DNA of 63,280 nucleotides, filler included, from Octopus bimaculoides (Eukaryota), in NCBI RefSeq assembly GCF_001194135.2. It is 5 parts of 4 records of this genome, joined end to end, with 100 filler letters (N's around TTAATTAATTAA, not from the genome) between each part and the next. Parts side by side here need not be neighbours in the genome. Positions count along the whole stretch, not along the records: positions 1 to 16,375 come from NC_069002.1; 4 more parts are not named here. The stretch is one strand, 5' to 3'. Within the stretch, counting starts at the first letter, position 1. Each line of letters begins with the position of its first letter. A program made the translations under genes and the position numbers. Positions 601-14,665 of this stretch are shown here, one piece after another. The notes beneath the pieces were generated by a model that was not told the DNA's origin, did no database searches, and saw only the letters and a program-made list of their open reading frames with translations.

Positions 601-757
601 CGTTGTTGTTATCTATATTTTTAGCTTATTCATTTCGCTGATAAATACCAGCTTTTTATAATAGAATTAATTCAAGATTTAAGAATTTAGGTAAAAGTGC
701 ATACCATGTTTTCAATTGCATTCCTTCTTTCTTATATTTCATATCATTAGTTGTGCG

Positions 758-824
758 ATGAGAAGAACTCTTGCACTCCTCTACATCGGCGTACTCATTT
801 CATGCGCCTCGTCGCAGAAGCAAG
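758..824 (+). CDS. Knottin gene 1, coding exon 1: signal peptide MRRTLALLYIGVLISCASS-QKQ
   Basis: Acceptor cattag| at 750, 7-nt UTR, ATG at 758, basic-hydrophobic-small-residue signal peptide, donor CAAG|gtaaat (phase 1). Mirrors exon 13249-13318. Confidence 0.8.
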
Positions 825-870
825 GTAAATATTCACCACTACCATCACTTCATAGTAATCCTAGAGGCGG

Positions 871-908
<38 letters not shown>

Positions 909-1106
909 GAAGCGGCGAGAGTCGTTTTTTATGTAGTCAAATGAGAAATTACTCTCATCAAATTTTCATGGCTCTTCTATCTTCCATACTATATTCATGA
1001 GGCCCACGTTATTCTTGTGTTCAGCCTTACCCTACAATGATGTGTATTATCATTCATTTAGTTTTTCCACGTCTATTTTTATTTCTATTATTATCGCTTA
1101 AATCAG

Positions 1107-1126
1107 ATGTTTCCAACCGAGTTCCA
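1107..1126 (+). CDS. Knottin gene 1, candidate propeptide exon 2a (DVSNRVP)
   Basis: Good acceptor cttaaatcag|AT; begins with Asp as the paralog's exon 2 does. The donor CCA|gtataa is weak. Confidence 0.35.
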
Positions 1127-1248
1127 GTATAACTGTTGAGGGCCCATATATTATATTGTTATTACTTACTTATACTTAGTGTATATGCTTCGTGTATTTT
1201 CCGATGGCTGCAATAAACTGGTGGAATATATACAGTCTCAAAGAGCAG

Positions 1249-1283
1249 GATGATAAAATGCCTCAGTATCGAGGACAGATCAG
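1249..1283 (+). CDS. Knottin gene 1, candidate propeptide exon 2b (DDKMPQYRGQI-R)
   Basis: Strong phase-2 donor CAG|gtaact, which makes Arg with the first base of exon 5429. The acceptor is uncertain (alternatives at 1180 and 1244). Confidence 0.5.
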
Positions 1284-2480
1284 GTAACTCACCCTCAATC
1301 ACATTTGTGAGTGATGAACACCGATGTTTCGCCATTGTTGTGACTTAAAACATCACCTACCCGCTAGGGTTGAAGTCAAGTTACCTAGCATGTGCTGGCA
1401 TGGCCGGAAATTGTATAGCAAAGAGAATATTTACATTATGAAATAAAAGCAGCCCTAGTTAAAATTTATGTACAATAAATTGGTTATATTCCTACAATCC
1501 ACAAAATATGACTTAATTTTTCACAATCATATATAGTTGTGGACAAGTGATTCAGTTCGGCTCCAATTCGGTTCCGATACGTGATGTTGATAAACCATAA
1601 AAATGGCAAAACATCGATGTCCATCGCATCTGAATCCTTCATAATCTCGAGACTTATCCCCAACAGATTATCGTATATATCCTCACATTGAGCTTTTCAC
1701 CTCTGCCCCCCCCCCCACCAAAATGCTTGCAAACAGAACGGTGGAGTGACTATATTTAAACGATTTATAACTTCAAAAGACAGTATAGTTTTCGGTAAAG
1801 GAATATATACTCTCTGAAGGTACTAGAAAAAAGTTTTTGAAGCTAATGAAGCCTAATTTGATTAATGAATAATGATTATAAATCGTTTTTCCTTTTTCGG
1901 TTCTTTGTGACCATTTCATGTAGAACAACCAAATATAATACATATTATACATAGTTTATACATATACTTATATATATGCATGCACGCACACACATACACA
2001 CATTATTCTCTTGTTATTCAAATATCTGATGAGAGCAGCTGAGTTATTTATATATTTCTATACATAAGACAGGATGTCCGAAGTCCTTGGATAGTTTTAT
2101 AACTTTTTAATCTTGGATGTTTTATTATATCATTTCTAGATCGCAGCATGTTCGATGATTTGTCAGAAGCAGATGATCGCTTGGAAAGAAGGTACGGATT
2201 ATATATTGACAATTGTTTGAGAATGGCATCAGTAACAGTGAAATAATTATTATAATTCTTCTGTTAAACTGATTTATTTGTGTTAGGCTTGTTTTGTAAA
2301 GAGTGTGTTGTGTCTTGTGTAACAAAAATAAAATGAGAAAATATTAGAGTAAGTGTGTGAAATATTGTCTGAATTAGTGGAAAAAATATTTATTTAAATA
2401 ATAACAAGTTTTGAACGGTACAACAACACACTATAATACAAACAACTATATACTTGTTGTAATTTGGTTATCCATAGTCC

Positions 2481-2515
2481 GATGATATTTCGGAATACAA
2501 TTCCTTCTTCAGATC
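2481..2515 (-). ncRNA. Minimal type I hammerhead ribozyme (Penelope-like), intact core
   Basis: Minus strand reads GAU CUGAAGA A GGAAU ugu AUUCC GAAA UA UC AUC: core, 5-bp stem II, palindromic AUAU stem III, UC cleavage site, 3-bp stem I. Confidence 0.7.
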
Positions 2516-11484: not shown

Positions 11485-11529
<45 letters not shown>

Positions 11530-12029
11530 NNNNNNNNNNNNNNNNNNNNNNNNNNNNNNNNNNNNNNNNNNNNNNNNNNNNNNNNNNNNNNNNNNNNNNN
11601 NNNNNNNNNNNNNNNNNNNNNNNNNNNNNNNNNNNNNNNNNNNNNNNNNNNNNNNNNNNNNNNNNNNNNNNNNNNNNNNNNNNNNNNNNNNNNNNNNNNN
11701 NNNNNNNNNNNNNNNNNNNNNNNNNNNNNNNNNNNNNNNNNNNNNNNNNNNNNNNNNNNNNNNNNNNNNNNNNNNNNNNNNNNNNNNNNNNNNNNNNNNN
11801 NNNNNNNNNNNNNNNNNNNNNNNNNNNNNNNNNNNNNNNNNNNNNNNNNNNNNNNNNNNNNNNNNNNNNNNNNNNNNNNNNNNNNNNNNNNNNNNNNNNN
11901 NNNNNNNNNNNNNNNNNNNNNNNNNNNNNNNNNNNNNNNNNNNNNNNNNNNNNNNNNNNNNNNNNNNNNNNNNNNNNNNNNNNNNNNNNNNNNNNNNNNN
12001 NNNNNNNNNNNNNNNNNNNNNNNNNNNNN

Positions 12030-12067
<38 letters not shown>

Positions 12068-12119
12068 CATGTATACACATATACTTACATATGATAGTAA
12101 TATATATATTTATATATAA

Positions 12120-12345
12120 CAGTGATATCCGATTTTAACAGTTATATTTACCAAAATTACATTAAAATATCTTGAAATACTAAAGAGTAAATTTATTCAA
12201 TAAAATCGCCATTGGCTTCAACTACGGCCTGCAGACGACTTCGGAACCTCCTGAAACTCTTCTGTATGGCCTCCTTGTTTAAGTTGATGAATGCTGCGAT
12301 AATCCTTGCCTTCATTTGATCTTTGGTCACATGATCGAATCTGTA
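12120..12345 (-). mobile_element. Tc1/mariner transposase 3' fragment in an intron of knottin gene 2
   Basis: Minus translation DHVTKDQMKARIIAAFINLNKEAIQKSFRRFRSRLQAVVEANGDFIE*, a typical IS630/Tc1/mariner C-terminus. Confidence 0.75.
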
Positions 12346-12436
12346 TCAACTCGGAAAGTAGACTTACAAGATTTGAGCAGTCTCAGGCTATTGCAAGGTG
12401 CTGACTCTGATACAATTATCAGAGTATAATACTTAC

Positions 12437-12491
12437 CGTCTTGTCACGTTTTCACTTTGTCTTTCTAACAACTCTTCAGGCAGAGCCAAAT
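12437..12491 (-). CDS. Knottin gene 2, exon 2: propeptide DLALPEELLERQSENVTR-R
   Basis: Acceptor tataatttccag|, donor ACG|gtaagt, 55 nt, phase 1 to phase 2; joins exons 1 and 3 in frame and creates a dibasic RR site. Confidence 0.88.
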
Positions 12492-13248
12492 CTGGAAATT
12501 ATATAATAAAACATTTGCAAAGATTGCATAAGATTGCATAAGCTTGGCCCAGAATGGCAGCTTGATTAGAGAGACGAGCTAGAGAAATGCGTGTCACTTG
12601 AAATGCGTGTCACTTGAAAGGCGTCAACTTGAAAGGCGTCACTTGAAAGGCGTCAACACTTATTATTCACAATCACTGCTGTCGTAGTAGTTTGGCAGTT
12701 TCTGCAAGTGGGTCACCTTCACGGTGACCTTCGGCGGTCCTTGAAAATCTCTGCATAAGTTAACAAAAACCAGCTGACCATACTTCTCATTTGGGAGTAA
12801 ATTTGTCTGAAGGCACCGCTGTCACTCTCACAGGACTATTGGCTTACTCTCTAGGCCTGAAGAAGTTGTACTTAATTCTAAACCCACACGTATCCCAAAC
12901 AGTACTGACACATAATACAGTTGAACCGACTGAAAGAAACGTAAATATCGTAGTCGGCCAAAATGATATGTGTGTAATAGCTAGCTAAGTAGCTGAAAGG
13001 CTGGATGGATGTATAGATCGATAGAAAGATAGAAATTCAATAATCTCATATAGTGGAGAGTTGCAAGGACTGCAAAGGTTCTTGCTGTTAGCCTTCTCTT
13101 GACATTTAACTGCACAAGAGCAACAAATCCACAACAATCCCACTCACTCCAATTCTCTCTTGTTTCAACATCTACTCACTCTTCACTTCCCCTCTGTCTC
13201 TCCTCTCTCTCTATTTCGATGAAGTGATAGGGAGTGTTGTGTACTTAC

Positions 13249-13318
13249 CTTGCTTGTGCGAAAAAGTTACTAAAACTAATGCAGAAATGAAGAAACAGAG
13301 AACATAAGCAGTATTCAT
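13249..13318 (-). CDS. Knottin gene 2, coding exon 1: signal peptide MNTAYVLCFFISALVLVTFS-HKQ
   Basis: Acceptor ttttataccaacag|, 7-nt UTR, ATG, hydrophobic core, donor CAAG|gtaagt (phase 1). Confidence 0.88.
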
Positions 13319-14665
13319 CACAAATCTGTTGGTATAAAAAGTCAACAATTAGAGATGTTGAAAACATGTAGATAAAGCTGGTCTCTATAGCAACAGTTCT
13401 ACCTCTGAAATTTAGATAACGAAATGAAAGAAAGTTTTCATGCATGAATTTCAATGCCGAATGTTGCGCAATACCACTATTTTACAGATTTTATTTGCAA
13501 AATGTAAGTTGCAAAATTTGTATAAGCGGCATACTTTGTTTGGAAATCTCAGCTTGTCAAGACTACCATTAGGACATTTAGTAACATAGACAAATAATTA
13601 TATTACATGGAAAAATGCGAGCAAGTATAAAAATTTTCTTGTTCTGTACTTTGTAATAACTTGTCCTGTACTTTTACAAGTTTATAATCTTAAGAATATT
13701 ATTTCTCTCGCTCGCATTTTCCCATGTAATCCATGTCTTTCCATACTATGCTATTATGCTAATTAATAATGTGTCAATCAATAATTTAAGATTTTTACCT
13801 TATTGAAAACTGAATAATAAATTTAATAGCTTTCTAAATAATATATTAATATTTTTCAGTTTTTTTGATTGAATTATTATTATCGAATTAAAATAAAAAA
13901 GTTTTAATATATTAAAATAAAATAAGGTTAGTATTTGAAGAGTACTTTATTTACATTGACTCATTATAAAATTAAAAATTGGAAATAAAATTAGAAAATC
14001 AGTGAATGCATCCACTCTGTGGCACGTGGAGCAATAAAATCATTTCAAAAACAAGGACACTGGATAGTAAAAAAAAGAAAGAAAATCGTGAAAAATCGTG
14101 AAGAATGTTGGTGCAAAAAATGGAACGAGAAAAAAGAAACGGAATGAAGAAAACTAAGTAAACTACATTCACTTGTGCAAAATTTGTGTCCCTTGATGAT
14201 ATTTAAACAAAGTGGGCTCACCATACATGACCGTTGCATTCCTCTAGTCTTAGCTCTACCGTTTCCTATTTTCGCTTCGTGTTCGCTCATTCTCCGATGT
14301 TTCTAAGTTCTTAGTAAGACGCACTATTTCTGCATTTTACATAAATTTTTGAAATGGTAATAAAAAATGGTCATATTGCGACATGTCTTACAGTTATTAA
14401 ATTTATGTTTTCAGTTATTCACCAGTTCATCATTCGAGATGTCATAAAAAAAGGCAGCTGCCTTATGTTCCTGTGTGCATATAAAGAAATATCGATTTCT
14501 TAAAATGACCATAATACCTAAAGGTGTTTTATAGAGTATATGGAATGCGGTCGACTTATTTCGTTGGGTAGTATTTGTATTTAAAATAAGTTATGTTTGG
14601 AGACAAATTCTGTTTTTTATTTATTTATTTTTATTTTTTTAGGATTAGACAAATATTGTCCCAAT

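Follow-up and report, generated by a model that had tools for sequence, protein, structure and literature searches.

CCWamides and agatoxin-like peptides (ALPs) are ancient protostome peptides, for which receptor and function are unknown in the literature (PMC8557429; PMC13311285). Spiralian CCWamides are orthologous to the arthropod ALPs (U8-agatoxin), as described by Thiel et al. 2021 (PMC8557429). In that account, family members have a short precursor with eight Cys residues, of which Cys 6 and Cys 7 enclose an aromatic residue, and are encoded by three exons, of which the first codes for the signal peptide and the last for the peptide. The introns are in phase 1 and then phase 2, as in the Lottia and Centruroides splice patterns in its supplement, and the second intron splits the last basic codon between bases 2 and 3. 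Spider venom recruited a CCWamide/ALP gene, which provides a published neuropeptide-to-toxin precedent (PMC8557429), while published expression of canonical CCWamides is broadly neuronal in Berghia and in the digestive gland in oyster. Here we analyse a stretch of Octopus bimaculoides DNA of 63,280 nucleotides, filler included (the window; positions 1 to 16,375 come from NC_069002.1; the part with both genes lies at C22:29145966-29162396 in the 2.34-Gb assembly), which carries two small genes facing each other tail to tail, gene 1 (LOC128250512, + strand) and gene 2 (LOC128250510, - strand). Both are probably divergent CCWamide/ALP paralogs within an octopus expansion on chromosome scaffold C22, and the pair is a tail-bearing, non-amidated, expanded form of a known family rather than a new family.

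Results

Two convergent genes with the CCWamide/ALP exon pattern

An earlier note on this DNA had proposed two spliced convergent genes. Both were rebuilt base by base, with three coding exons each and GT-AG at every intron, and they equal the RefSeq models. Their features are as follows.

751-824, + strand: gene 1 coding exon 1 (acceptor AG 749-750, 7-nt leader 751-757, ATG 758)
2140-2191, + strand: gene 1 exon 2, acidic propeptide D RSMFDDLSEADDRLER R(AG|)
2192-5428, + strand: gene 1 intron 2, GT..AG, with assembly gaps 3670-3686 and 4438-4664 inside
5429-5638, + strand: gene 1 terminal exon coding sequence (knot 5439-5528, linker and tail 5529-5635, TAG 5636-5638)
13249-13325, - strand: gene 2 coding exon 1 (acceptor AG 13327-13326, 7-nt leader 13325-13319, ATG 13318)
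12437-12491, - strand: gene 2 exon 2, propeptide D LALPEELLERQSENVTR R(CG|)
11272-12436, - strand: gene 2 intron 2, with assembly gap 11530-12029 inside and (CA)n on either side of the gap
10992-11271, - strand: gene 2 terminal exon coding sequence (knot 11243-11136, tail 11135-10995, TAA 10994-10992)
about 14160-14290, - strand: gene 2 upstream 5' exon, boundaries approximate, placed by homology to the Octopus sinensis model

An acceptor lies exactly 7 nt ahead of each ATG, as the note had it. Coding exon 1 encodes the signal peptide, MRRTLALLYIGVLISCASSQKQ in gene 1 (followed by the first base of an Asp codon) and MNTAYVLCFFISALVLVTFSHKQ in gene 2. It ends ..CAG AAG CAA G|gtaaat in gene 1 (donor GT 825-826) and ..CAC AAG CAA G|gtaagt in gene 2 (at 13249), both in phase 1, which bears out the (Q/H)KQ-G|gt ending reported before. 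The propeptide does end in Arg at a phase-2 intron, and, beyond what had been noted, this intron splits the second codon of an Arg-Arg pair, with donors ..AGA AG|gtacgg (gene 1) and ..AGA CG|gtaagt (gene 2). The family intron signature is therefore present in both genes, as AGA AG|gt..ag|A in gene 1 and AGA CG|gt..ag|A in gene 2, with CAA G|gt before it.

The spliced product of gene 1 has 108 residues (MRRTLALLYIGVLISCASSQKQ / DRSMFDDLSEADDRLER / RSVKCKKWTCNIPHDSCCDGQVCSCKSLWTGCICKDADSSCAIIAMHNYICILICLLAFLLHVVWTFYM) and that of gene 2 has 134. The RefSeq protein of LOC128250512 (P0003) contains the whole gene 1 model at 100% identity, with the exon 2 product at its residues 34-51, and adds 11 residues from a 5' exon that is located 2.7 kb left of the window and spliced onto acceptor 749-750. 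That the RefSeq model uses this acceptor is seen from P0003, whose sequence reads on upstream of it (..LSCA|MRRT). LOC128250510 equals the gene 2 model at 100% identity over its full length, and the O. sinensis model P0002 crosses the same gene 2 acceptor (..WFV|MNTVH). The 5' exon of gene 2 aligns with residues 1-43 of the O. sinensis model (E 2.5e-19), its DNA is 88-90% identical to a paralogous block and to O. sinensis, and it is probably untranslated in O. bimaculoides. Both genes thus extend beyond the 751-13325 range first given for them, by one extra 5' exon each. It had also been remarked that gene predictors could easily miss exons this short. They did not miss the window genes, since both are already annotated in RefSeq, but the remark carries some weight for the G1-type ortholog of O. 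sinensis, which is uncalled in its record. The existing annotation names no known family: both entries read "uncharacterized protein".

The terminal exons both contain the CC-x4-C-x-C-x6-C-x-C core described earlier, within the spacing C-x4-C-x6-CC-x4-C-x-C-x6-C-x-C in gene 1 and C-x6-C-x10-CC-x4-C-x-C-x6-C-x-C in gene 2. In a six-frame translation of the window there are exactly two instances of this 8-Cys pattern, against none in 300 dinucleotide-preserving shuffles. The count of nine Cys per terminal exon was wrong: there are 11 in each, and the "ninth" Cys of gene 1 is lost in O. sinensis (DSSC to HPSY).

Probable assignment to the CCWamide/ALP family

Both spliced products follow the family's precursor order of signal peptide, with its cleavage predicted from the sequence, non-conserved spacer peptide, basic site and C-terminal Cys-rich peptide. 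The Cys framework, in which Cys 6 and Cys 7 enclose an aromatic residue, is present as CCDGQVCSCKSLWTGCIC in gene 1 and CCRGHACICNVYWTACTC in gene 2, and the eight Cys are invariant in an alignment of 13 octopus loci and 4 published sequences. Gene 2 has the spacing of the oyster CCWamide, C6C10CC4C1C6C1C, without change, and its CAGWHRPCSP resembles CRGWRAPCIP of Lottia (CxxWxxPCxP in both).

A hidden Markov model (HMM) of the family was built from 21 published CCWamide/ALP peptides, with E-values at Z=1e6. Gene 2 scored 32.8 bits (E 3.8e-6), the neighbouring paralog LOC128250515 25.5 bits and an AgRP control 10.6 bits; over 375 open reading frames (ORFs) of the window, the two terminal exons were the sole matches. 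When 1.84 billion representative proteins were searched exhaustively by HMM, ten matches came back, all octopus paralogs or proteins of other molluscs. The non-octopus matches, from Argonauta, Gigantopelta, Liolophura ("toxin Tbo-IT2-like") and Pecten ("U8-agatoxin-Ao1a-like"), are CCWamides. In a tree, the ALPs formed their own clade (support 100/98), and the canonical cephalopod CCWamide grouped with molluscan and annelid CCWamides.

The reading of the genes as encoding agatoxin-like prepropeptides with a putative cystine knot is upheld, with Cys spacing, intron phases and, for gene 2, the family HMM in agreement. The suggestion that they form an undescribed family is not, because the nearest relatives in the exhaustive search are molluscan CCWamides; the exon pattern, too, is the published diagnostic of CCWamides and ALPs (PMC8557429).

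Several results weigh against this assignment. The C-terminal aromatic amide that defines the family is missing in both genes: after Cys 8 there is no aromatic-Gly amidation signal (KDADSSCAIIAM.. in gene 1, VESFFYKFRSGATT.. in gene 2), and we therefore file them as a divergent subfamily rather than as CCWamides proper. Gene 1 alone scored 13.7-16.2 bits on the family HMM, at the level of an omega-agatoxin IVA control (16.6 bits), so it is tied to the family through intermediates only, namely LOC128250515 (E 6.7e-17, with identical signal peptides) and LOC128250537 (60% identity). On the Pfam model Toxin_9 (cut-off 21.3 bits), gene 1 (10.9), LOC128250515 (15.1) and LOC128250537 (16.6) remained below the cut-off, which was passed by gene 2 (22.2), its O. 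sinensis ortholog (23.0) and canonical CCWamides (23.5-25.4). Weak support comes from AlphaFold2 (AF2) models, which place a beta-hairpin at CxC..CxC of gene 2 (strands 74-77 and 86-89, predicted local distance difference test score, pLDDT, 64-81) and strands at 71-74 and 83-86 in gene 1, but overall confidence was low (mean pLDDT 62 for gene 2 and 56 for gene 1). The top short Foldseek matches were knottins (Hm-3, grammotoxin, omega-Aga-IVB, ASIP and tachystatin), none of them significant (best E 0.88), and a sequence search of the PDB with the gene 1 knot matched delta-palutoxin and mu-agatoxin only weakly (E 0.28-0.35). The protein clusters of both products hold genome-derived models only. 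Finally, all rate tests given below rest on small samples (22-36 codons).

Copies in the genome and in O. sinensis

C22 carries at least 11 family loci, the window pair included, and one more copy lies on an unplaced contig. These numbers come from three single-protein searches of the genome and are a lower bound. The loci on C22 are as follows.

29.12 Mb: partial copy
29.136-29.141 Mb: LOC128250515
window: gene 1 and gene 2
29.176 Mb: LOC128250511
36.25 Mb: LOC106867751
36.36 Mb: LOC128250542
36.412 Mb: unnamed G2-type copy
36.4175 Mb: LOC128250537
36.4275 Mb: further copy
37.31 Mb: further copy

A local paralog cluster had been predicted, and copies do lie on both sides of the window, at 29.136-29.141 Mb and 29.176 Mb. 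Window positions 306-14531 are moreover colinear with, and inverted relative to, C22:36419972-36406051, 7.26 Mb away, at 72-88% identity. This block includes the 5' exons and part of the spacer, and its pair is again tail to tail. Therefore, the convergent pair was duplicated as a unit.

The partial copy, at C22:29123623-29125960, is of the G1/LOC128250515 type and has exon 1-like and exon 2-like pieces (VALLYIGVLISCTSSQKQ; DRNMSGGRSETDYVHMDG). Its terminal exon was not found and may sit in gap 29128099-29128744; a candidate "exon 3" at 29127671 proved to be the tail of a short interspersed nuclear element (SINE). The canonical octopus CCWamide is on another scaffold, at about C2:132.12 Mb, with its terminal exon at C2:132123381-132123518 (..CKCNLWMQNCRCVNKLWGG*). 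Its C-terminus reads ..CRCVNKLWGG, and UniProt names the old model (A0A0L8HXQ3) "Agouti domain-containing protein".

The O. sinensis pair is likewise tail to tail, and 8/8 Cys are kept in both genes, which settles in the affirmative whether the Cys frames persist in a related octopus. The gene 2 ortholog, LOC118767484, is 82% identical. The G1-type terminal exon (CM016880.1, locus coordinates 25472-25693, - strand) is intact; it carries 8 Cys and a tail ending ..HVVWTFYM* as gene 1 does, and is missing from the called genes of CM016880.1. A literature search on agatoxin or CCWamide in octopus and cephalopods found no description of these copies; subscription journals were outside its reach, and absence there is not proof. 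The tail-bearing octopus clade thus appears to be undescribed so far.

Fast loops in gene 1, a conserved knot in gene 2

The comparison of orthologs that the earlier note had called for separates the two genes. Between species, the ratio of nonsynonymous to synonymous rates (dN/dS) is 0.23 for the gene 2 knot and 0.59 for the gene 1 loops. Nucleotide identity is 77% in the gene 1 loops and about 90% in the non-coding blocks next to them (Fisher p=0.002). BLAST blocks were used for this comparison, as global alignment of the ortholog flanks (identity 0.39-0.56) suffered from indel misalignment. Among paralog pairs, non-Cys loops were more diverged than flanks in 3/4 (p=0.0005, 0.027 and 0.026), and the G2-type pair showed no difference between loops and flanks. 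The bases of the Cys codons were kept 24/24 in the G1-L004 and G2-L003 pairs. Paralog knots had dN/dS of 0.43-0.71, and the values for the tail were noisy (0.27-3.3). As the G2-type is conserved, it is probably an endogenous signal; the G1-type, being diversifying, is possibly directed outward.

A conserved signal peptide, fixed Cys and fast loops are, by analogy, also the pattern of toxin and defence peptide families. The C22 copies, chiefly those of the G1/LOC128250515 type, could accordingly be secreted toxins or antimicrobials of salivary gland, skin or sucker, derived from a neuropeptide gene. We regard this as possible, if on the unlikely side. The tandem and segmental arrays fit it, as do the signal peptide shared without change by gene 1 and LOC128250515, the invariant Cys, loops that outpace the flanking non-coding DNA, and the published recruitment of a CCWamide/ALP gene as U8-agatoxin in spiders. 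However, acceleration is not seen in gene 2 or its paralog L003, a hydrophobic tail of such length is atypical of a soluble venom peptide, and knottins of cephalopod venom were not found in the literature searched.

A C-terminal tail shared by eight sequences

What takes the place of the amidated end? Gene 1, gene 2, the O. sinensis gene 2 ortholog and five further O. bimaculoides copies have in common a post-knot extension with the core (H/C)NYICxxI(C/S)LL(A/S)F. It is 28-50 residues long across the clade, with 35 after the eighth Cys in gene 1 (linker and hydrophobic tail KDADSSCAIIAMHNYICILICLLAFLLHVVWTFYM, 5529-5635) and 47 in gene 2. A tree of the knot only places exactly these eight sequences on one side of a branch (support 97/91), and the tail thus arose a single time. 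Kyte-Doolittle (KD) hydropathy over 15 residues is strong in gene 1 (3.15) and weak in gene 2 (1.12), and AF2 predicts the tail to be helical, with pLDDT 79-82 in gene 1.

The distal tail is not conserved in frame, since a frameshifting indel separates gene 2 from its O. sinensis ortholog; this difference may possibly be an assembly error in one species. At 11011-11040 (- strand) the window encodes the O. sinensis C-terminal octapeptide FCLAWVLR at 100% identity, out of the gene 2 frame. In gene 1, a 20-nt perfect tandem duplication (CTTTTACATGTAGTATGGAC, 1.9 copies) at 5604-5641 gives rise to the last four codons and the TAG, and the same arrangement is found in O. sinensis. A C-terminal likeness between gene 1 and LOC128250537 (VWTFYM/VFTFWV) was discarded as an alignment artefact, the gene 1 end coming from this duplication. 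Translated TA/TG microsatellites of this genome yield tail-like peptides. The tail may be a membrane anchor, a glycosylphosphatidylinositol (GPI) signal, a propeptide or tolerated read-through, and we cannot tell these apart.

If the tail were a GPI signal or a C-terminal anchor, the products would be membrane-tethered knottins, with the knot exposed on the cell that makes it and modulating a receptor or channel in cis, like the lynx1-type prototoxins. This is doubtful in our view. The tail core persists in 8/8 clade members as well as in the two O. sinensis orthologs, hydrophobicity extends to the C-terminal end of the tail in 7/8 members (KD 1.6-2.4 over the last 15 residues), small residues (DSS, SGA) precede the tail, no dibasic or Gly-basic site lies between it and the knot, and the AF2 helix would suit such a role. 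By hydropathy, a GPI-type signal is compatible with gene 1 and 6 other copies and not with O. bimaculoides gene 2, whose end is polar. The unstable distal frame, the origin of the gene 1 end in the duplication, the noisy dN/dS of the tail and the similar peptides from microsatellites, common in this genome, all speak against it. A bolder version, a long shot at present, would have an octopus CCWamide turned into membrane-tethered knottins by replacement of amidation with a GPI or anchor tail, followed by positive selection on the G1-type loops, or else into a new venom or defence class.

The likeness of the tail to translated microsatellite, together with the paralog knot dN/dS and the frameshift differences, could also mean that these are decaying duplicates. 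Having lost their stop and amidation signal, they would read through into repeat-derived 3' sequence and be non-functional or nearly pseudogenes. This is very unlikely. Every copy examined, at 60-85% DNA identity, retains the eight Cys codons, all splice sites and the open frames, both genes are syntenic in O. sinensis, and the gene 2 knot is conserved; as loops diverge faster than flanks, relaxed constraint alone is insufficient. That an independent, undescribed cephalopod knottin family converged on the agatoxin Cys pattern is hardly credible, for although gene 1 by itself has no significant similarity to published CCWamide/ALP peptides and cystine-knot spacings do recur by convergence, gene 2, LOC128250515, LOC128250511 and LOC106867751 bridge gene 1 to the canonical CCWamide by sequence, and the introns agree exactly with those of CCWamides and ALPs in both position and phase.

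Assembly gaps, spacer and repeats

All four assembly gaps are intronic or intergenic and no reading frame crosses them. An exon hidden in a gap is argued against because neither the O. sinensis gene 2 ortholog nor the neighbouring paralog LOC128250515 shows an extra exon. The former, from an independent assembly and a gap-free stretch, joins ..SENVTRR|AKSK.. without extra residues; the latter has the same three coding exons with a gap-free intron 2. In gene 1 intron 2, a TA microsatellite flanks gap 3670-3686. A short ORF inside gene 2 intron 2 (12193-12345, - strand) ends ..FRRFRSRLQAVVEANGDFIE*, which appears to resemble the C-terminus of a mariner-type transposase.

The genes are separated by the following feature.

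5639-10991, no strand: spacer between the stop codons, 5.35 kb, with AT-rich DNA and gap 9703-9712

The spacer holds, at 5880-8100 (+ strand), a string of broken ORFs resembling a decayed retroelement, followed by microsatellites at 8100-8370. Pfam returned zero matches for four spacer ORFs. Window positions 5838-6692 are 90.6% identical in O. sinensis, and parts of the spacer are common to the paralogous block; the retroelement-like insertion is therefore old.

Elsewhere, positions 74-311 are a SINE-like repeat, of which the 30-kb O. sinensis locus has at least 9 copies (84-87% identity), and positions 15371-15430 hold degenerate TTAGGG-like units (gttagggttagggttaggattacggctagggtttaggtt), an interstitial telomere-like repeat. 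An ARAGORN scan of the window found no tRNA genes.

Discussion

We favour the reading of both genes as members of an octopus CCWamide/ALP expansion. The sequences themselves show the exon structure, the kinship to the family, the clustering, the synteny, the kept Cys and the contrasts in rate. For such members we infer secretion, cleavages, disulfide pattern, target and tissue along the lines of a peptide precursor. Each gene would encode a secretory prepropeptide from which the signal peptide of exon 1 is removed. A proprotein convertase would cut behind the Arg-Arg pair split by the phase-2 intron, and the product of the terminal exon would fold into a four-disulfide inhibitor cystine knot. 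The mature product would most likely be an extracellular ligand of some receptor or channel.

As an expansion of this family, the octopus copies would be the second, independent one after that of spiders, and a natural experiment on the re-use of a neuropeptide gene, with one branch conserved, another diversifying rapidly, and a new C-terminal module, all on one chromosome. They are candidate ligands for receptor de-orphanisation and a possible new source of cephalopod bioactive peptides. CCWamide/ALP genes can be found reliably by this exon pattern. At least one ortholog, the G1-type of O. sinensis, is uncalled in its record. Should the bolder version above be true, the tethered knottins would be the cystine-knot counterpart of the lynx1/Ly6 "prototoxins", or the copies would form a novel cephalopod class of venom or defence peptides.

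How do the octopus genes compare with described systems? With the spiralian CCWamides (Platynereis, oysters, Lottia, nemerteans; PMC8557429) they share the precursor layout, the three exons and the phases 1 and 2. They differ in three respects. Spiralian CCWamides have an amidated aromatic-Gly(-basic) end, whereas the octopus pair has a tail of 35-47 residues with a hydrophobic core; spiralians have 1-3 genes, compared to many clustered copies in octopus; and gene 1 has shorter first and second loops, of x4 and x6. The arthropod ALPs and U8-agatoxin-Ao1a, from venom and from neuroendocrine cells of insects and crustaceans, have the same CC-x4-C-x-C-x6-C-x-C framework, share gene structure and intron phases, and are likewise a case of a neuropeptide gene copied for another use. 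In contrast to the octopus copies, from which they form a separate clade, ALPs are highly conserved (..CRCNLWGTNCRCQR.GLFQKWGK) and amidated.

Among domain families, Toxin_9 (PF02819, spider toxins) is the best Pfam family for every member tested, although its model covers the knot only and not the precursor or the tail. The C-terminal domain of Agouti and AgRP has a similar cystine-knot-like fold with a CC..C.C......C.C core. AgRP has 10 Cys and another spacing, and Pfam scans of family members returned no Agouti match. The conotoxin O-superfamily (PF02950) also consists of molluscan prepropeptides in which the signal is conserved and the Cys-framed mature region hypervariable. From signal to knot, gene 2 scored 23.5 bits on its model, below the cut-off of 25.1, and gene 1 gave no match. 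Conotoxins of this superfamily have a 6-Cys framework compared to the 8 Cys here, and the closest relatives of the octopus genes are CCWamides, not conotoxins.

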